Of a stretch of DNA of 64,000 nucleotides, positions 19,240-60,862 are shown piece after piece (position 1 is the first letter of the stretch; each line of letters starts with the position of its first letter). A program made the position numbers and the translations under genes. Location of the stretch: the NCBI GenBank assembly GCA_965113315.1, contig OZ220365.1; one strand, written 5' to 3'. The stretch comes from Podarcis vaucheri (taxonomy: Eukaryota). A model generated the notes under the pieces. That model made no database searches and had not been told where the DNA came from. It was given only the letters and a program-made list of their open reading frames with translations.

Positions 19240-19373
19240 NNNNNNNNNNNNNNNNNNNNNNNNNNNNNNNNNNNNNNNNNNNNNNNNNNNNNNNNNNNNN
19301 NNNNNNNNNNNNNNNNNNNNNNNNNNNNNNNNNNNNNNNNNNNNNNNNNNNNNNNNNNNNNNNNNNNNNNNNN
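19240..19373. other. Assembly gap (134 N)
   Basis: Run of N. Confidence 1.
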
Positions 19374-21534: not shown

Positions 21535-21859
21535 GACATGGGTGGCAGGTGGCGCTGTGGGTTAAACCACTGAGCCTAGGACTTGCTGATGAGAAGGTTG
21601 CGGTTTGAATCCCCGTGACGGGGTGAGCTCCCATTGCTCGGTCCCTGCTCCTGCCAACCTAGCAGTTCGAAAGCATGTCAAAGTGCAAATAGATAAATAG
21701 GTACCGCTCTGATGGGAAGGTAAACGGCGTTTCTGTGAGCTGCTCTGATTCGCCAGAAGTGGCTTAGTCATGCTGGCCACATGACCTGGAAGCTGTACAC
21801 AAGCTCCCTCGGCCAATAAAGCGAGATGAGCACCACAACACCACAGTCGGCCATGACTG
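21535..21859 (+). mobile_element. Sauria SINE (3'-truncated)
   Basis: A-box region ggtggcgctgtggg, B box ggtttgaatccc, body shared with the other copies. Confidence 0.9.
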
Positions 21860-22590
21860 ATTCCACAGGTTCTAAATACAAGTTATTTACTGACTTTGGG
21901 AATATTAATGAAAAGTTTTAGTATTGACGTTTAAATTAAAACTAACACGGTCACTTTCCTTTCATAGGCAGCAGTGGAAATTTGTTGCACACCCAGTCTG
22001 CTGGACTGAGATTATTGGTCCAGTGCTTAGCCCCAAATCAATGTGCTAGATTGCAGTTCTTTGTACTTTTAGCAATAATTTCATGCAAGGATTCTGTTCA
22101 TAAAAGGGACTTTGATTCACCAGAGGCTCCTCTTGCACAAGGAGGAGGAAATGTTTTTCACTTATTCCTCCTTCCCACACTGTTCCAGAGAATTCACCAA
22201 TTCTGCAGAGCAGGTTTTCAGGAAACTGCAAGAGACAGGAGGATTTTGCAAAAAACCACCTCTTCCTTTCCACCAGTTGGGATGTCCCAGAGTGCAGTTC
22301 TGCTCAGTGTGTCCTGCCACAGGCAACGAACAGACCCAGCGCTGCACTTGGGTTGTGTGTGATGTATTCCGTACACTTCGACTGGGTCCATTTAGGCAGC
22401 AGTAGCATTGGCTCTCTTAGTATCAAATTACTCATCTCAACCTAATGCACAACAATTATTTGTGAACTAAAGAACCCGCTTACCTTTCAAATTAATTAGT
22501 TATTCAGTAGCACCAGTAATTATTCAGTAGCACCAGTAGGAATAAGGAATAAATTCAAATAAAATATGCAATCATTTTTATCTAACTTGC

Positions 22591-28080: not shown

Positions 28081-28318
28081 TGTATTGAAGTTCTCACCCT
28101 GGCCACCTATCTATTGTGTATAGAGTTTTCACTCAGGTCCAACTTAAGTTAATTTAGGTGGGAAATCCTGGGCTGTTGTAGTTACAATGTTGACAGCCGG
28201 CTGCCTGTAAAAGCAGGCCGGTTGAGCTGTGCTCAGTGCAGTTCAGTTCCAGCTTGCTTATAAAGAACTACTTGGAGAAATCTCTGTGTCGTCTGCTATG
28301 TCCACCTTCTACATAATA
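28081..28318 (+). mobile_element. Possible solo LTR
   Basis: Starts TG(tattgaagttctcacc), with TATA-like and polyA-like motifs in LTR order and a degenerate 3' end. The TSD is not clear. Confidence 0.35.
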
Positions 28319-28397
28319 GAATAGAAGCCCAGCATCCCAGAATCCTACATATGGAAGCTCCTTAAGAGACTTTAGGACCTTGGTAACCCAGCCAGGC

Positions 28398-28725
28398 GGG
28401 ACGCGGGTGGCATTGTGGGGTAAACCACAGAGCCTAGGGCTTGCCGATCAGAAGGTCAGCGGTTCGAATCCTCGCAACGGGGTGAGCTCCCGTTGCTCAG
28501 TCCCTGCTCCTGCCAACCTAACAGTTCGAAAGCACATCAAAGTGCAAGTAGAAGGTAAACGGCGTTTCTGTGCGCTGCTCTGGTTTGCCAGAAGCAGCTT
28601 AGTCATGCTGGCCACATGACCCGGAAGCTGTATGCCGGCTCCCTCAGCCAATTAAGCGAGATGAGTGCCGCAACCCCAGAGACGGCCACGACTAGACCTA
28701 ATGGTCAGGAGTCCCTTTACATTTA
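28398..28725 (+). mobile_element. Sauria SINE
   Basis: gggacgcgggtggc head, B box ggttcgaatcc, tail cctttacattta; TSD cagccaggc at 28389-28397 and 28726-28734. Confidence 0.92.
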
Positions 28726-31710: not shown

Positions 31711-32165
31711 AAAAAATCTTGCACATACATTAAGGAGCAAGTCTGTGCGCCCTTGGCCCTACCCCAAGCATTGGACACACCAGTTGGCCCCACTCTAAAT
31801 GCTGGCATGGACATCAGGGCAACGCAGCATGTACAATGTCAGGAGCAGGCCCAAGACCATTGTGCCAGTCTTTAGTAATCATGTGATTTTCCTTTCCCAT
31901 AAACAACATGTGGAGGATGGCCTTTTACAGTTATGTTTCAATATATGAAATTGCTGCTGTGTAACAAATTCAGGGCAGCGTTGTACTAGGATTGTGTGAC
32001 CATGCTAGAAAAATTGGTGCCTATGAATCAAGGAGCAATTTTGTAACATTTAGAAATACATTGAATTTCCTTATGCTTATACCCAAGTTAGAATGTTTGG
32101 GGAAAATAATCACCATTTTTAATACTCAATTTTCTATTCTAATATTTTGTTTCAGTTTCTAGTAC

Positions 32166-32351
32166 CTTTAATGATTCTTCCTGAGTAGAAAAATCTTCAT
32201 AGACACCAGAATGAAGTTCCGGAGCATTCAGCAAAAGCTCAGCATCAGCTATAGCCAGCAAAATCTTGTTAATTTCAACCAGGTATTCTGCAGGGAATGG
32301 AGATGCCCTCGTTGTTGATGAGAGAGGACCTTGAATCTTCTGCAAGACGGC
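32166..32351 (-). CDS. UTRN: Utrophin exon, DMD ex42-equivalent (186 nt)
   Basis: ttctttag|GCC...AAG|gtacta; AVLQKIQGPLSSTTRASPFPAEYLVEINKILLAIADAELLLNAPELHSGVYEDFSTQEESLK. Confidence 0.93.
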
Positions 32352-32429
32352 CTAAAGAAAAATAAACTTAAGCTTAGCTCTTTTAAAATAACTTCAGTAT
32401 AAGATAAAAACAAATTTCATTTATTTGTA

Positions 32430-32640
32430 CAGTGGACCCTCCAGATATAAACTTAATTCGTTCCGGGGTCCATACATACCCCCAAAAGTCCACATCTAGA
32501 GGCACTGCTTCTGTGCATACACAAAGCGCACAGAGTGCTTCTGCGCCATGTGCACGTGGCAAAACCCAGAAGTATACACTTCAGGCTTTGTAACCCAAAA
32601 GTTACGTTACCCAAAGGTAACGTAACCCGAGGGTGCACTG
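32430..32640. mobile_element. Tc1/mariner (Tigger/pogo-like) MITE
   Basis: TA|cagtggaccctc...gagggtgcactg|TA; related to 5012-5226. Confidence 0.8.
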
Positions 32641-35600
32641 TATTTGCTTTATGTCCTCTCTTTCAGGTTCAGTGCAGATTAAAGCCTTTTTAAAAAGTAC
32701 TGAACTGAAAAATAAGCTATTAAAATATACCAGATAAAATCAAGTTTTTAAAATTGAAATCCTATCCCCAAACTAAAATCCCTGCCATGTGACTCCTTGT
32801 TATAATTAGAAGGAAGTATATCTACTTTGTCCAGAGCAGGTACACCAATAACTTAATTTACTTTCTTTAAAATGAATCACCCTATATACCAATACAAATA
32901 TACTCCAGTCAAACAAGTATCACCTCAATTTATCAGCTCTAGTTATGGGGAAAGGGTGGAGATAGCCCATCCTAAATTAACAGAAAGTCTTTTCCCAGGT
33001 TCTCGAAATGTGGACATTCATTTTTATAATTCTCAGTTGGCATGGAGGCTAATGCATGCCCATGATGACTTCTGACATTTTATGTCTATAGACACACTAA
33101 GCTAAGTCAAAAGAGAACACTAAAAAGCATGTTTTCCTACAGATAGCAAGAGCTTCCTCAAAATAGGAAAGCAGCCATACAACAAGGTTAAAACATATAA
33201 TCAGTCTTGTAACTTTATTCCATACAGAGCATATCATTGTTTGGGGAGCTTCTCTCTCCTCCTTCTTTAAAGCAGAAAGCATCAGGAAGAATGTGGGAAA
33301 TAAAAGTATTTTGAAGTGCTGTGCCTGAGCCCCATCAACTTCTGGAAAACCATGAGTTCCCCAACCCTAGTTTAAAAGAATCAGTTAGACAAATTCATAG
33401 AGAACAGGGTTCTGAATAGCATAATAGTTGAAGCACCATAAGCTAGTGGTGATAAACAACAGTAAATGGTCACCTTCATGCCTTGCTTCCAGAGACATCT
33501 GGTTAACTGCTGCTGGAAGCATAACACTGGACGAGACAGACCTTGGTCTGATCCCCAAAGGCAGTTCATTCAAAGGGGAACAGCAATTATCTGCTTCTGT
33601 TCATCAAAGTTGTATTCTGCCCTTCCTCCAAGGAGCTCAGTTTGGTGTATGAATGGTTACCAAGCCAACCTTATGCCAGATGCAATGAGCTAGATAATAC
33701 AGTATCCCCAACTGGCTAATCACTAAAAGATGAAGCCAATCAAAACCAGGCACAAAAATATGGTTTTTCCTTTTCTGAATCACCATATACAGAATTGCAT
33801 CTTCATCAGAGTCCAGTGCAGAGTGAAGGTCATCAACAAGGTCTCCAACAGAGAAATGTTAAACAAGTTGCAGTACTATTGATCAATTGCTGTTTTGTCA
33901 CCTACAGTATGCCAAAAATTAATGAAAACCTAAACCTCAGCAGCCTTATGTTCAAGGTTCAATTCAGAGAAGACAACAGCTATGATTTTCCAGATCCTAC
34001 ACAAAGGGCATTTGAGCCAGAAAAATAGACTGGGGCAATTCATATAAAATATTTTTAAAATATAAACCGCAAACCAATGATTAATACTTGGTGCAGCTCT
34101 ACACATGCAAATCCATCTTTTTGATTTCTCTTCATTACTTGAGCACTACCTGTACAAAGGAGAATGGGGGTGACAATCAGGCTCCCACCCTGTCTGATAT
34201 TTGCATGCTGACATCAATTCTTAACAGGAGGTTTCCTATGTGAAGTCCAGTGTGCAGAAGGAAAATGATTGGCTGCTACAAAGCAATGACTGGTACTTTT
34301 CCTAAATACATTTTCTGTGGGGTAAAATGATCCAAACCTGTTGCTGGCCGCCTTCACTCTCATATTAATTCACAAATTTCAGCCCTTTTTGTAAGAAAAT
34401 AATTGTCACCCATTCTCCTCACACTATATCATCCCAACCTAAATTCCCTGACTTTAAAGCTGCTGTTAGCTCCATGGAAAGAAATGGAGGTAGCTGCTGA
34501 CAAAACAGGGCACTAAATTGGGAGGACTTTAGGCATCGTTATTCTATGCTGCATAAGCTTGAATTTGAGTCTTTCACATTCTATGTTCTCCTCAATAATT
34601 GGCTCTGGGCTTTAAAGTTATAGGAGAGTCATAAAGAGATTGATTCATTTAATTATAAAGTCCCATAACCAGAAATGCAAAAGTATTTGACAGATTGCCT
34701 AATGCACAAGCTTGTCCAAAAAATTACTTACTGCTTCAGACGACTCTTCACTATTATATAAAATATAACAACAATTCTTATGACAGACTAAATATTTGAG
34801 AAAAGTGGACGCATTAGAAATGGAAAATGAAAAGCTTTGTATGTATGAATAATTGAAACAGACAAGCTTTCTGAAGTCAGTATCACAGTACTGCACTCAA
34901 TAAAATTCTCACAAATATTTGACTAAACAGCAGATTTTAATACATCCAATTTAAACATATCCAAAATAAAATCATAAGTGGTCAAATTAAAATCAGATCA
35001 GGGGTTCACTTGACTCAGGGCTTACCAAGGCTCAAGAAACTGCCCAGAAACATAGCAGGATATGATCCTTCTCCTTTAGTCATGCTCACCTGTGAGCAAA
35101 ATCTGAACACAAGGAAAACTTGAAAGGCCCAGGAAACGCCTTAAGAAGAGATGGCTAATGAACAGAGATAAAAATAATCACAGATTCCCATTCATAGATA
35201 TCACAGTTGTCCTGAGGCCAGAGAATTGAAGAGTAGCACATTCCAGCTTCTGCCAACAGCCAGGAAACCTAGGGTCACTACCTCCCGAAAGAAACATTGA
35301 GGCAACAGGGAGACTAACTGGCCTTTACCATCAGCCAAATAAGAAGCAGCTACAAAGAGCTTACTTCTCCCCATCCTGCCTGAAAAAATACTCAGCTTTA
35401 GCTGTGTTTAGCCTCTGGGACTGCTAAAGTAAGAAGAAAGAACACTCTGGCCTCATCCATTGGCCAAAGGGACCAAAGTCACCAATTGCTATTCAAGCAG
35501 ATGAAGATCAACCTTGCCTGAACTGGATATAAATGCCCTCTCACAGCTCACCACTTTATTCTGGCTTTGAATAACTAATCTCCCTCCTTCACCTTTTCCC

Positions 35601-36008
35601 TCTTCTCCTGCCTTTTTACCGTAGTTTATAAACCAAATGACAAGGTCTTTCTCTCATTCTCTCTCTCGTCCCCCTCCCCCTCTTTCTCTCTTTGATTAAT
35701 ATGAGACACATTAGCAGACAATTATCTGAAAAACAAGACTGAAAATATAGTAAATAGATAAAGAAGATCCACTTCTCTCAAGATTTCACATGCTATTGAT
35801 AAATAATTTATCTGAAATGCAGCAACCTGAATGTAAGTAAATATGCTTTCGAATCTGATCTTTCGCTACCCTGTACAGATCTAGCCTCAAAAGTCAGTCA
35901 TAACATTGCTGGATCCACTCACAATTGAATGTGTTAATGGCCAATGTAACATTTCAAAAAGAGATGGCAAGTTCTTGTAGCCCAATTATAGGAACGTGTC
36001 TTCTTCCT

Positions 36009-36366
36009 TAAAGGTAAAGGTACCCCTGCCCGAACGGGCCAGTCTTGACAGACTCTGGGGTTTGTGCGCCCATCTCACTCAAGAGGCCGGGGGCCAGTGC
36101 TGTCCGGAGACACTTCCGGGTCACGTGGCCAGCGTGACAAAGCTGCATCTGGCGAGCCAGCGCAGCACACGGAACGCCGTTTACCTTCCCGCTGGTAAGC
36201 GGTACCTATTTATCTACTTGCACCCGGGGGTGCTTTCGAACTGCTAGGTTGGCAGGCGCTGGGACCGAGCAGCGGGAGCGCACCCCGCCGCAGGGATTTG
36301 AACCGCCGACCTTTCGATCGGCAAGCCCTAGGCGCTGAGGCTTTTACCCACAGCGCCACCCACGTC
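36009..36366 (-). mobile_element. Young CpG-rich Sauria SINE
   Basis: Full length on the minus strand with (ACCTTT)n tail; TSD gtcttcttcctta at about 35998-36010 and 36364-36376. Confidence 0.95.
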
Positions 36367-36654
36367 TTCTTCCTTAGTGGGGTCTAAAACATTAAACTCC
36401 AGCTAGATGGACAAATCCTTTATCAGCGTCCTTTACCAAAGGGTAAATTTTGTGCAGTGGTCCAGTTTAGAATTTATTGACAATTTTATTTTGTCAATAA
36501 TATGATGACATTATTGACAAAAAACCTTTAAAAAAACCCATCCTCTAGTAACAGTTACAGTACTGGTAGTGAAAGTTTATTGGCTAGATGGTCTGTTAGT
36601 GTAACTTAAGGGGAAAGTTTTAAAAATATTTTTTTCACAATAAATAAGATCTAC

Positions 36655-36807
36655 CTGCAACCTCCCCTCATCTTCTGCTTCCTCTGTTCCAGAAAGGCTT
36701 CCATCTGTCTCATTGAGCCAGTGCAAATGACTGTCTTGTTCTGTCTTATATTGGGAGAATGAAGGAGAGAGCTCCACCACCTGTCTCCTTTGTAACGACC
36801 TAAGTTC
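36655..36807 (-). CDS. UTRN: Putative extra utrophin exon homologous to DMD exon 40 (153 nt, phase 0/0)
   Basis: ttcccttcattctttgcttatag|GAA...CAG|gtagat; ELRSLQRRQVVELSPSFSQYKTEQDSHLHWLNETDGSLSGTEEAEDEGRLQ. Same length, phase and position as DMD ex40, with a gapless match to its peptide as recalled. Confidence 0.8.
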
Positions 36808-37912
36808 CTATAAGCAAAGAATGAAGGGAATATAAAGCAAATGGTTGACAGAAGCAGCAGAAAAGCAGTTGTGTATGTTCAATCACAGATGTTTAGAATC
36901 TACAAAAGAAGTGCAAGCTGAAATGGCAAAAGTATTTGTTGACAATTACGACCCCAAACAACATCTGGCAGGGAGCTGGGTTGATATTGCATGCTGCCAC
37001 AATCACCAATTTCTGTCTTAACACAGATTGCCTTATTTGAAAAATAATTCTGCCAAGGATCAATTTGCCTATTTCCCAGGCACCAAATTTAAATGGTTCC
37101 CCAACCCTCAGCTGGAGGTGGGGTTCCTTGAAGGCATCTGAGGCAAAAGAGGATCTTGCCAGGTTGAAGAAGAGTCTTCTCAAGTGCTGAATGTTACATC
37201 AGTAATCCAGAAATTTAAAAAAATGCAACCCCTCTTCTGTCCCACCCCCATTTCTCTTACCACCATGCTGGTGTAAATTAAGTTGTGGCTGGGGGCGGGG
37301 GCTAATACCTACTCAGTTTCTATGAGCCTAATATGGAACTCTCTGGTTCCATTGGGGAAGATGACAGGGAATTAGAAACAGGGCTCTGCCTTTCATCAGT
37401 CGCAGACAAGAATAAAAGAGCTGAACAATTTTACCCAATATTAACATATTTTTTTAATATGGAGGCAACTGCAGATCTAATTGGCCCCGATCCCTCACCC
37501 AGTTTCAATGGCACATGCACCTATAAGCATATTTTCTTTCTTCCATTGAAAGTGGGTAAAGAGCTAACTCAGAAGATCAAATTCATACAGAAGAATATTT
37601 GTGTGCAGAGAGTACTGGGTTTTGGGCAGAACTAAAACATTTAATGACTAATTCATCCATTTAACCATCCTAGTTTCAGGGTGATGAGAGAAAAGATTCC
37701 AATATATCAGAAGTGGAAAGCCACGTGCACCTGGCTTGAAAAGACATCTGTGTCAATGAAATGAAAAATCAGAAGTTGGACATGGGTGTGTGCATGAGAG
37801 TTACAGAGTTTTCTGATGCCGGCAGGCACATGTTGCTTAGGAGAGAGGAAACTATACTGCAGATGTCTATCCTATTGGATGGGTGGGTGGAGGGAGAACA
37901 CAATAGCTTCAC

Positions 37913-38050
37913 CTTAGCGCTGCTTTGCCTGGTCTGCAGAAGCAGAAGCTGCAAACGAATTCTCTCATGCCTGCTCTCTTCCATTGGCTGTTGCAGTAGC
38001 TTTTCACCTTTTTGTAGAACATCCTCAATTTGAGCCCTCTCTTCATCCAA
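37913..38050 (-). CDS. UTRN: Utrophin exon, DMD ex39-equivalent (138 nt)
   Basis: ttttag|TTG...AAG|gtgaag; [46 protein letters not shown]. Confidence 0.93.
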
Positions 38051-38473
38051 CTAAAATGATAACAGCACAAGAACACTAAACCGTTAATGATACTTTAAGG
38101 GAAAATATTCCCCTTCCTCTCAAAATGGATATAACGGGCAGTATTCAACTAAAATAAAAATGCATGAGCAGAACAACTTCCATTTGCATAATGGGACTCT
38201 TCCTTCTCCTAACCACATCCACCCTACACCTTCCCAAAATCTGCTCTAGAATGTTGGGGGAATCCCCAGGAAAGGTTTAGGGGGTGCACAGGGGGAGGGA
38301 AAGGATGGAAAGTCCCTTTCTGCAGCATAATTCATTCCGCTCACACAAGTGCTACACTGAACACAACCCAGTATCTGTGAAGAGAAACATGCATAAAAAT
38401 GTACAGAAGAATAGCTGAAAATGTGTTTAATAAAGGCAAGTGCAATAATCTGTTTCATTCTAATCTCACACAC

Positions 38474-38629
38474 CTTTTCATCATCTTCCTTTGATTCCAT
38501 GTGTTTCTCTACAACCTTCAGCATATCCTGTAACTCACTTTCGAATTTATCAATGTCTGCAGAATCCACTGCAATTCCATGGGTCCCTTGCTTGACAAAC
38601 ACTTTATGAGCCTCCTGACTGAAAAGCAT
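38474..38629 (-). CDS. UTRN: Utrophin exon, DMD ex38-equivalent (156 nt)
   Basis: ccatcag|ATG...AAG|gtgtgt; MLFSQEAHKVFVKQGTHGIAVDSADIDKFESELQDMLKVVEKHMESKEDDEK. Confidence 0.9.
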
Positions 38630-43303: not shown

Positions 43304-44130
43304 ATTTATTTATTTATTTATTAATTATACCCCGCCCATCTGGCTGGGTTTTCCCAGCCACTCTGGGTGGCTTCCAACAGAACCCTAAAATACAATAACC
43401 TATTAAACATTAAAAGCTTCCCTAAACAGGGCTGCCTTCAGATGTCTTCTAAAAGTTTGGTTATTTTTCTCTTTGACATCTGGTGGGAGGGCTTTCCACA
43501 GGACGGGTGCCACTACCGAGAAGGCCCTCTGCCTGGTTCCCTGTAACTTGGCTTCTCGTAGCGAGGGAACCAGAAGGCCCTCAGTGCTGGACCTCAGTGT
43601 CCGGGCAGAATGATGGAGGTGGAGACGCTCCTTCAAGTACTGGACCAAGGCCGTTTAGGGCTTTAAAGGTCAGTACCAACACTTTGGCGGGACGCGGGTG
43701 GCGCTGTGGGTAAAAGCCTCAGTGCCTAGGGCTTGCCGATCGAAAGGTCGGCGGTTCGAATCCCCGCGGCGGGGTGCGCTCCCGCTGCTCGGTCCCAGCG
43801 CCTGCCCACCTAGCAGTTCGAAAGCACCCCCGGGTGCAAGTAGATAAATAGGTACCGCTTACCAGCGGGAAGGTAAACGGCGTTTCCGTGTGCAGCTCTG
43901 GTTCGCCAGATGCAGCTTTGTCACGCTGGCCACGTGACCCGGAAGTGTCTCCGGACAGCGCTGGCCCCCGGCCAATAGATGTGAGATGGGCGCACAAACC
44001 CCAGAGTCTGTCAAGACTGGCCCGCTCGGGCAGGGGTACCTTTACCTTTACCTTTACCAACACTTTGAATTGTGCTCGGAAACGTACTGGGAGCCATTGT
44101 AGGTCTTTTAAGACTGGTGTTATATGGTCT
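43304..44130 (-). mobile_element. Young L2-clade LINE 3' fragment
   Basis: ORF2 C-terminus ARTLRSS...RQRAFSVVAPVLWKALP...FRRHLKAALFREAF, 3' stem-loop and (AAAT)n tail. Confidence 0.88.
43687..44054 (+). mobile_element. Young CpG-rich Sauria SINE inserted in the L2 element
   Basis: Full length with (ACCTTT)3 tail; TSD taccaacactttg at 43674-43686 and 44055-44067. Confidence 0.95.
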
Positions 44131-46462
44131 AGAGGGAAGAGGGATTCATTTTGTGGTTTGTCTCAGGTGCCAAAATGTCTTGGGCGGCCCCTGCTACCTG
44201 AAATTATCTACTGATGGGAAATGAAGTTGTAATTTTTAAGACAACTTATATCTTCCTCTTGCCTTTATCAAATTTGATTTTATTAGATTCTGCCATTTAT
44301 TTTATTATGCAATTACTCCTTGTTCCAGTTCCATTTGTTATTTCATAAAGTTTCTTGTTCTGCATGTGGGGAACTATATATCTATCTATTATGGAGCAAT
44401 TCAAACTACTTTTTGTCTGCATGTGTGCATGTACTTTTCGTGAAGTGGAGGGAACCTTATGTAATTCTTCCCACTATAATATACATTTTTGTATAATGGT
44501 ATGTGCGTAAGCACTTGTTAATTAATAAAGTAGTGCCTTTTCTCTAAATCGCTGTGAAGCACAGAGGATATTGCAACATTTCAAATACATTACACTGAAA
44601 CATTTAAATACTACTAATCATATTGAAGTATGTTGTATACAGATAGTAAAAAGGTCCTCAGATCACAATTATTTATAGCCATTTTAACATAAGAAGGATT
44701 TGTGCAGTTTCCTTGCACGACAAGAAATTATACTGTTCCATTTTTAACATCAATCCTCAGAACACAATACTCCTCCTTGTAGGCTAATGACTTTTTGCAC
44801 TCAATTAGGCAAATAATTGACTAACCATGACATTCTCTAAAATAGCAATCAATAATTAAAACAAGCAATTAAATTCAAAAAGCGAAGAACTGTATTACAT
44901 TATGGAAAATGAAACACATTGGTGAGCCTTGGATCTAATACGCCTTTTTTTGGCTGGCACAATTCAGCTTTTAGAGAAAACATTTTTTTAAAAAAATGTC
45001 TATAATAAGGCAATCAAATTTAAAAGATAGTGTAAGGTTTTAAATTATCCATGCCAGCTTGGGAAAAAGCAGTAAAGGAAGCATAGATACAATATATGCT
45101 TAAATATATGCTCAGAACTAAGTATTGGGGAGAAATTTGGAACAAAGTATGATATTTGTGTAGTTAGCTACTTGGTTGATTTTTTAAGTAGGTAAAAAAA
45201 AAATCTTTATATAGCTATTTTAACCACTTTAATTCATCACTGAGGGGATTTATCATGTAACAGATAGCAAATATTAAGTGTTGCTGCTGTGGAATTATAG
45301 AGATTAGCTTCTCCAATGCGGTTTTGTATAGTGGTTACAGATCTAATAGCTAATTCTTTAACATTTTAAATAATTTTCTTTGAGCAACAGCCAACAAAAA
45401 GGCTTATATTACTAAACTCTAACTTATCCTAGAAGAACAGGCAGAGGTGAAGATAGGGCTTGGCAAAAACAGCACCTGACGAGAACACAGGCCCAGGTGG
45501 AGTGCAAAAAATCACCATTCAGACTATGAAGTGTATGGTGTATATGTGTGTGGTGCCACACCTCCGCTGTTGCAGCAAGATCAGATGCAGAAGCCTCCCG
45601 TCCTTCTCGCACCGTGGCAAAATTATGGGGGGGGGTCAATACAGCTCCTTGCCAGGGGCAGAAGAGACCCTTGGTACACCTCTGAGAACAGAGGATAAAC
45701 ACTACCCACTCACAATAATCATGTACCATATGCAATGTTTTTAGAATCTAATGCTGGAAGAAAATGCCTAAGATTTTCCTATTTATAATCAGCAATGCAT
45801 AGTTGACCACCATTTGCATAGCAGAAAATTGTACTTGAAAAGCATGCGTCAATTTTTCTTCATCAGCTTAATGTAAACCAGGAAAAAGTTGCACTATGGA
45901 CTAAGTATTGAACCAGCAAAAAAGCAGCACAACAATTCCTTCTAGTGCAACAGGACTTTCCACTTTTCCTTCCCCTAGCCCCCAGCTCTCTGGTACCGTC
46001 CCCAAAATTGCTCTGGGTGGTCCAGAGACCACCATCATCCGCAAGAATGGGGGGGGCGGTTGTTCCATCAGGCAAGCTGAACATGGGGGGGATGAGGACA
46101 GATTGTTCCATCAGGGAAACAGAAAAGGAGAAAAACTATTAAATAAATTATTTGGAAGCACTATGAGCCCTGCAGCTGGGTTGCTATTGACACTGCAGCA
46201 AAAATTAAGGCAACAGTAGCTTCACAAGTGAACTAGAGGGACAGAATTATGTTGGTGCTTCTACATAGTCTGGAAATTTCTAGCGCTTATATAATTTGTT
46301 TAATTTATATACAAGGCTTCAAGATGGGCTACTCATAAGAAAGTGCATTTTTGTTAACAGTTGCCCCAAAGATGAAATAGAAACAATTGTCTCTGTTTTG
46401 TTTTCGGTTTTTAAATCACAAAGGAATACAAAGGAGAAAGGACAAGATACAGTTTTTCTTAC

Positions 46463-48707: not shown

Positions 48708-49426
48708 CTGTTTATAAAAGAAGGCAACAATATCAAACTGTGACCAGAAAGAAAACACCCCCAAGAGGTTTCAACAACCCTCCTCCTCCATCTCATTGCT
48801 TAGACCATGCAGCACGTCTCCCAGATACCTATCCTAGTTTCTTGTACAGTCTTGAGCCTAGCACAGGATGCTTGTCCTTATCTTCAAAGGACTCCAGATT
48901 CTCATGCCCTTATCACATCTCTCTGCTCTTAAACCTCAATACATCTCTACCTGTGACTGTCACTCCTACAGCAAAACCCTAGGCTATCCAAGGTCTCCTG
49001 TTCCCTCAAATGATTTCATCCTTTCTCCCACTATGACGAGAAATACCTCTTACTTATGTCTTATATGACCCACAGGAAGCTGCCTTATACTGAATTAGTT
49101 GTCTACAAAGACTTACTGTCCGTTCCCTAGTTCCCATGCTCGGGGTCCAGCTTGGCAAGCCATGAGAAGTGGTCCATCAGCCCGGGCTTATCACCAAATC
49201 TCAAAGGTATTGTGCTCAGTGTTCAGGATAACCCTTTGCCTATTCTTTAGAAATTGTTCCAAACTAATTAGGTTTTATGTAGACTTATTGTGTAATTTAC
49301 AGTGTAATATGCTGTATGCAGGCTAGTTCTGTCCCAGGGTCAGGCTTTAGTAATATGGCACTCTGAGCAAGGACAAAATTTGGCACACACTCCCAACTTT
49401 GAGTAGGTACCCATATACATACAAAT

Positions 49427-49480
49427 ATGATGATTATGATGATGATGATGGTGATGGTGATGGTGATGGTGATGGTGATG
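49427..49480. repeat. (GAT)n/(GATGGT)n microsatellite
   Basis: Read directly; it explains the poly-His and poly-IT ORFs. Confidence 0.97.
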
Positions 49481-50087
49481 CACTCCCTTAGCTCTGTGCC
49501 CAGTGGAGAAGAACTTTCCACACCACCCTAAATCCAGAACTGCCAGTGCTTTACACTCGGAAACTATATGTATTGTACACTGATTCCTGCTGTACATGAA
49601 TAAAGTGCGTAGCCTTCACCCTAAGTGTGCTTACCACCCCCAAATCACAAAGAAGGCTGCCCTTTGTCAGAACACATCCTGCATACGAATTCTGAAATAA
49701 TTCAAATCATGCTTTATTTCTACAACTAGCAGTGTCAACCTCCCATTTTATTTTTGGAGCTGTTCCAATGACAATGAATGTATTGAAATTTAGAAATCAG
49801 ATCAACAGATAATTTAAACAAACTTCTAAGATGCCCTTCATCTACTGGATCTCAGGGTGATTTTCTAATGATTAATAGAACAATTAATATTGAAAAGCAG
49901 CATCAAGACAAATCAAAGACGCACAAGAAATTTATAAAGCATCAAAATTATTTATCTATTAAACTTCTGCAAATCAAATTCAAGTAGCAGGACTCATGTT
50001 TATCATCCACAGGTGCCCTCTCCATTTTTTACTTATGCGGTCAGTTGCACTCCGTCCTGGTCACTGTCAAATGTTTGTGATATTTAC

Positions 50088-60532: not shown

Positions 60533-60862
60533 ACACGGGTTGCACTGTGGGTTAAACCACGGAGTCTAGGACTTGCCCATCAGAAGGTCGGTGGTTCGAA
60601 TCTCCGCGACAGTGTGAGCTCCCGTTGCTCAGTCCCAGATCCTGCCAACCTAGCAGTTCGAAAGCACATCAAGTGCAAGTAGATAAATAGGTACCGCTCC
60701 GGTGGGAAGGTAAACAGCGTTTCCGTACGCTGCTCTGGTTCTCCAGAAGTGGCTTAGTCATGCTGTACACTGGCTCCCACGGCCAATAAAGCGAGATGAG
60801 TGCCGCAACCACAGAGCCAGCCACAACTGGACCTAATGGTCAGGGGTCCCTTTACCTTTACC
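60533..60862 (+). mobile_element. Sauria SINE
   Basis: B box ggttcgaatctcc, shared body, tail cctttacctttacc. Confidence 0.92.

Follow-up and report, generated by a model that had tools for sequence, protein, structure and literature searches.

A utrophin coding exon of a wall lizard as the probable counterpart of dystrophin exon 40

Exon organization of the lizard utrophin locus

The window analysed here is a 64,000-nt stretch of the genome of the wall lizard Podarcis vaucheri (GenBank assembly GCA_965113315.1, contig OZ220365.1; position 1 is its first letter), which carries a series of utrophin exons on its minus strand. In the direction of transcription, these are (i) an exon-38 equivalent (38474–38629), which served as a rate comparator; (ii) a 138-nt exon-39 equivalent (37913–38050), ending in ..QTRQSSAK|gtgaag; (iii) a 153-nt exon (36655–36807) that encodes 51 amino acids and is the subject of this study; and (iv) a 186-nt exon-42 equivalent (32166–32351), which starts with AVLQKIQ.., ends with ..QEESLK|gtacta (AAG|gtacta) and corresponds to the start of spectrin-like repeat 16 (R16). 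The 138-, 153- and 186-nt exons are all in phase 0/0, and the last two are separated by a 4.3-kb intron (32352–36654).

The 153-nt exon sits inside the utrophin gene and on its coding strand: its flanks match both a utrophin-like gene model, P0001 (KAJ7342012.1, labelled 'hypothetical protein', 195 aa, from the agamid lizard Phrynocephalus forsythii and found with the 51-residue exon as query), and dystrophin residues 1743–1862 and 1994–2039. The dystrophin reference is PDB 9c3c_D, a full-length rabbit chain of 3696 residues and the one such chain in the PDB sequence set. The exon-38 equivalent is 71% identical to P0001 residues 35–86 and the exon-39 equivalent 80% identical to residues 87–132, which reach dystrophin residue 1862, while residues 17–62 of the exon-42 equivalent match dystrophin 1994–2039. 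We also considered that the gene might be dystrophin itself and rejected this reading, as the window is 67–94% identical per exon to P0001, while P0001 aligns to rabbit dystrophin with many mismatches and several gaps (60 bits over 185 residues).

The minus strand contains no stop codon over the 153 nt from 36807 to 36655. The exon is preceded by an acceptor with a pyrimidine-rich tract and AG (tattcccttcattctttgcttatag; 36808–36832), which reads ..ttatag|GAA at the exon boundary, and is followed by the donor CAG|gtagatct (36647–36654), the GT position of which is kept in all orthologous fragments (..Q|V..). The original prediction had described a stop-free, phase-0/0 segment of this length with a strong acceptor and a CAG|gtagat donor; direct reading agrees with it throughout, and the 51 residues it quoted are the translation of this strand. 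Its placement of the segment between equivalents of exons 39 and 42 is likewise borne out by the alignments of the flanking exons to dystrophin. The presence of a 153-nt exon-like segment in utrophin is therefore confirmed. Stop-free stretches of similar size are common in the window, with many open reading frames of at least 55 aa, so the open frame of the exon alone proves nothing. It is more than chance because it is spliced in RNA and because its open frame and 3' boundary are conserved in other species, as described below.

Several other features were observed in the window. The 4.3-kb intron contains a Sauria-type SINE (36010–36366 in plus-strand coordinates) flanked by the direct duplication tcttcttcctta; this element has no Rfam match above noise. 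The SINE motif ..TFRSASPR.. also occurs in open-reading-frame translations near 21565–21882, 28271–28651, 43673–44162 and 60583–60839. A run of 134 N (19240–19373) marks an assembly gap or a masked stretch, and a CAC/CAT microsatellite (49343–49615, minus strand) gives ∼20 histidine codons in an intronic open frame.

Transcription and splicing

Transcription was inspected in raw reads of a stranded RNA-seq run (X23) that bears the same species label. About 12% of this low-coverage run was read, for the region 32150–38100; junctions were listed from three reads upwards, and the depth of each bin was adjusted to its exonic part. All X23 reads lie in one orientation. A joint at 36806>37912 (cut +1, CT..AC on the plus strand) reads as GT..AG on the minus strand and connects 37913 to 36807, as had been predicted. 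Five reads with five different starts carry this joint, the shorter side extending over as many as 63 nt. After adjustment to exonic sequence, one half of the exon is covered ∼3.9x and the other ∼6.9x, compared with ∼6x for the upstream exon and ∼1.3x for the downstream exon; depth is 0 in all intron bins outside the SINE. The junction reads and the matched depth together indicate that the acceptor is in use and that the exon occurs in RNA roughly as often as the one upstream of it.

Two further joints had been proposed for inspection along with that at the acceptor. Neither the donor joint 36655>32351, which leads into a downstream exon covered only ∼1.3x, nor the skip joint 37913>32351 reaches the 3-read listing in this single low-coverage run; splicing of the exon is seen at the acceptor side. 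Within the exon, reads and window differ only at 36766, where a serine codon changes synonymously.

Three other runs (X1, X4 and X9) consist of sparse, low-depth, DNA-like pieces and very high-copy SINE sequence, and are uninformative on splicing. The SINE at 36010–36366 reaches enormous depth in every run examined. In the same intron, a 39-nt stretch (35854–35892) is matched by ∼3,700 RNA-seq reads of which both flanks are unlike the window; an abundant transcript or a repeat from another genomic site probably contains this stretch too. At 32315, a T>G difference appears in all three covering RNA reads and replaces Thr by Pro at codon 13 of the exon-42 equivalent; of the five exonic positions at which the RNA run departs from the window, this one alone is non-synonymous.

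Conservation across species

The 51-residue translation was compared with 1.84 billion representative proteins in a full scan, and a profile search was added. Exons were searched singly, and the spliced context was taken from the database protein P0001. This protein represents part of the same gene in spliced form: three preceding exons are followed by the 51-residue exon immediately after ..QTRQSSVK, and its gene model places the donor at the same position as in the window. Identities between the window and P0001 are 94%, 71% and 80% for the three preceding exons and 67% for the 51-residue exon (34/51, no gaps), the lowest value of the four.

The protein scan and the profile search also returned 13 further short open-frame fragments that fall into three sequence groups. 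In the aligned exon sequences, W30, L31, E33 and G40 are invariant and S14, P15, Q19, Y20, K21, S39, E45 and D46 are nearly so, and the exon end followed by V (Q|V, i.e. CAG|GT) is common to all fragments. Groups 2 and 3 are 85–95% alike within the exon, while their read-through translations of the intron diverge within three codons. Stops or frameshifts in close relatives, together with a lack of spliced reads, had been named as the mark of a dead remnant; the 15 sequences contain none of either, and their single indel is an in-frame deletion of one codon in P0019. A frame of 51 codons that stays open and free of indels from Podarcis to Phrynocephalus, across a deep squamate split, would not be expected of neutral sequence.

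The first ∼24 nt after the exon (36630–36654, minus strand) read VDLIYCEK in the window and VDTFYCEK and VDALNCEK in P0019 and P0002. Judged from these translations, a splicing signal adjacent to the donor may be conserved at the intron start.

Other searches returned less. Two metagenome scans gave no match. A homologue search with P0001 residues 87–132 plus the exon returned only P0001 itself, and one with the exon alone gave no candidate, both within a length window that excluded full-length utrophins. The 469-aa protein P0023 was considered as a spliced utrophin fragment and rejected, because it is an unrelated protein resembling bacterial-type response regulators. Its listing in the cluster of P0013, which otherwise consists of 48-aa exon fragments, looks like a clustering or look-up artefact.

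Correspondence to dystrophin exon 40

We then compared the lizard sequences with dystrophin. P0001 residues 2–186 are colinear with dystrophin 1743–1916 (E 2.5e-15, 60.2 bits), and the alignment is gapless across the exon at 1863–1913. With the orthologous fragments included in the profile, the score against dystrophin increases from 60.2 to 67.7 bits. The end of the upstream exon falls at dystrophin residue 1862, and residues 1994–2039 are matched by the downstream exon with an E-value of 5.6e-4. We take dystrophin (DMD) exons 40, 41 and 42 to encode residues 1863–1913, 1914–1974 and 1975–2039, respectively, and exon 40 to be 153 nt long and in phase 0/0. On these coordinates, the alignments make the three lizard exons equivalent to exons 39, 40 and 42. 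This agrees with the proposal of a dystrophin exon-40 counterpart, which lies gapless against residues 1863–1913 and is flanked by exon-39 and exon-42 equivalents. A repeat of the earlier hand count again gave 16 identities in 51 gapless positions. The position just upstream of the R16 equivalent stands as well, the downstream exon being that of exon 42.

Exon-only comparisons point to the same register. The best stretch for the lizard exon alone is dystrophin 1863–1912 with 11.0 bits, the next best in the 24-repeat rod scoring −0.3 (E 1.3); for P0013, a group-2 fragment, it is 1874–1914 with 15.3 bits, followed by 3.4 (E 0.21); and for profile A4 of group 3 it is 1873–1912 with 15.6 bits, followed by 1.0 (E 0.1). 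Three independent queries thus fall into one register (1863/1873–1912/1914), 10 to 15 bits above the other 23 repeats. None of these matches is significant database-wide among solved-structure sequences (E 1.3, 0.21 and 0.1), and the exon-only profile A2 did not retrieve dystrophin from the PDB sequence set. As the exon-only E-values are not significant, the case for homology rests on register, position, length and phase rather than on score.

Missing exon-41 equivalent and predicted structure

In dystrophin, the sequence of exon 41 follows that of exon 40. The 4.3-kb lizard intron contains no phase-0/0 AG..GT segment of spectrin-like composition, and neither the intron scan nor the RNA depth nor the alignments reveal a counterpart of dystrophin 1914–1974 in lizard utrophin. 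Because an exon-41 equivalent is absent, lizard utrophin lacks repeat 15. A complete spectrin-like repeat comprises ∼105–110 residues in three helices (A, B and C), of which merely 51 residues are present here, and Pfam gives no match for any of the three exons, spectrin included. The original prediction that ancestral R15 sequence is retained thus holds for the half encoded by the exon-40 equivalent, while the whole repeat is not there.

Confidence is low in an AlphaFold2 single-sequence model of P0001 (mean pLDDT 56; ∼42 over most of the exon). The model contains one helix that spans the junction of the exon-39 and exon-40 equivalents up to exon residue 13, and the rest is undefined. Together with the alignments, this outlines a possible role for the 51 residues, which are added between the utrophin repeats equivalent to R14 and R16. 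The first ∼12 residues (ELRSLQRRQVVE) would prolong helix C of the preceding repeat. They would be followed by an S-P break, a segment resembling helix A that includes the spectrin-type tryptophan (FSQYK....WL.E) and an acidic loop (SG..ED), directly after which the linker and helix A of the R16 equivalent would begin. Helices B and C of repeat 15 are supplied in dystrophin by exon 41 (residues 1914–1974), and this partner is absent in the lizard, so that the insert is unable to fold into a complete three-helix repeat. Its most likely role is that of a helical extension followed by a flexible, acidic inter-repeat linker.

Alternative explanations

The exon might be a regulated cassette that is included or skipped by tissue or isoform, in which case it would still be real. 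The original prediction had reached a cassette from a donor that it called weak, an argument that finds no support: against MAG|GTRAGT, the donor CAG|GTAGAT agrees at 7/9 positions, compared with 7/9 for the upstream donor (AAG|GTGAAG) and 6/9 for the downstream one (AAG|GTACTA). With a donor that is not weak, a depth equal to that of the upstream exon and no skip joint listed at three or more reads, inclusion looks predominant in the X23 sample, where five reads carry the inclusion junction. Points in favour of regulation are that the 153-nt exon is in frame, so skipping would be tolerated, and that the first ∼24 nt of the downstream intron are recognisable in P0019 and P0002, a kind of intron conservation typical of regulated exons. 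The single informative RNA run is also of low coverage, and some skipping may be compatible with it. On balance, we regard regulated inclusion as rather unlikely.

Two further readings concern the origin and fate of the exon. If intron sequence had been exonised in reptiles, its likeness to dystrophin exon 40 would be a chance resemblance among spectrin-type helices, and both the database-wide non-significance of the exon-only searches of solved-structure sequences and the lack of a Pfam spectrin match would fit. Chance would, however, have to account for three independent queries that settle on one dystrophin register, 10 to 15 bits above the other 23 repeats, for an exon located exactly between the exon-39 and exon-42 equivalents, and for a gapless alignment over 51 residues that equals exon 40 in what we take to be its length and phase; we consider this highly improbable. 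Scarcely credible, and already disfavoured, is a decaying remnant that is spliced in merely as noise. Such a remnant might well evolve faster than the other three exons compared (67% identity) and be unable to form a full repeat alone, but it should not match its neighbouring exon in RNA depth, nor stay free of stops and frameshifts in 15 sequences with one in-frame codon indel (P0019), nor differ from the RNA run by a synonymous change only.

The proposal of a genuine utrophin exon thus finds agreement in the acceptor junction in RNA-seq, in a depth close to that of the upstream exon and in a frame conserved in other species. We consider it likely that positions 36655–36807 are a genuine coding exon of wall-lizard utrophin, included in most transcripts and derived from a common ancestral exon with dystrophin exon 40.

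Evolutionary meaning

The absence of R15 and R19 is a textbook difference between utrophin and dystrophin, and utrophin is closely studied as a dystrophin substitute in Duchenne muscular dystrophy. Our results show that in a reptile utrophin the exon-40 half of R15 is still present, transcribed and conserved. In mammalian utrophin, the exon-39 equivalent is presumably spliced directly to the exon-42 equivalent, and the exon described here would then have been lost later in the mammalian line. It is reasonable to infer that R15 was lost from utrophin stepwise.

A broader scenario would be that selection has preserved in non-mammalian utrophins a 51-residue module with its own function. This module, a lone helix A with an invariant pattern (SP..QYK....WL.E....SG....ED) located just before the R16/17 equivalents, might serve as a phospho-regulated hinge or a partner-binding site. 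In such a scenario, mammalian utrophin would be secondarily reduced, and R15 would have disappeared in two steps, exon 41 before exon 40. We regard this scenario as speculative and, on present data, improbable.

Dystrophin R16/17 bind nNOS and syntrophin. The lizard exon therefore provides a natural variant of the R14/R16 junction, adjoining a region whose dystrophin equivalent recruits nNOS. The finding refines gene-family history and annotation within a well-known protein architecture and adds no new mechanism; its use lies in annotation and in reconstructing the loss of the two 'missing' repeats, and its evolutionary interest is modest. At least one automated gene model, that of the agamid P0001, already includes the exon, and automated models in general probably contain it. 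Our literature searches yielded no description of an exon-40 equivalent in the utrophin of any vertebrate, and the gene-family survey of Jin et al. (PMC1790709) does not mention the region of this exon.

Comparison with known systems

The closest known counterpart is dystrophin exon 40, which encodes the end of helix C of R14 and helix A of R15. The lizard exon shares its exon order, its gapless length of 51 residues and its phase, as well as the residues LRS, E.S, QYK, L..L and DE, although the two are only ∼30–35% identical. In dystrophin, exon 41 comes next and completes R15, whereas in lizard utrophin the exon-42 equivalent follows directly.

The rod domain of mammalian utrophin is the product of the same gene and has the same flanking exons as in the lizard, and a complete R15 is present in neither. 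By contrast, the lizard transcript has 51 extra residues between the exon-39 and exon-42 equivalents, which presumably adjoin each other directly in mammalian utrophin. Utrophin has been described as having 22 repeats and as being without the sequence of dystrophin R15 and R19 (PMC10789850).

Finally, the non-repeat linkers and hinges of the dystrophin and utrophin rods (e.g. the short R15–R16 insert) likewise lie between full repeats, contain proline and glycine, are acidic and have no three-helix bundle of their own. The lizard segment differs from them in its origin, a former repeat, and in its remaining helix-A signature, of which the conserved tryptophan is part; its role as a hinge is putative.
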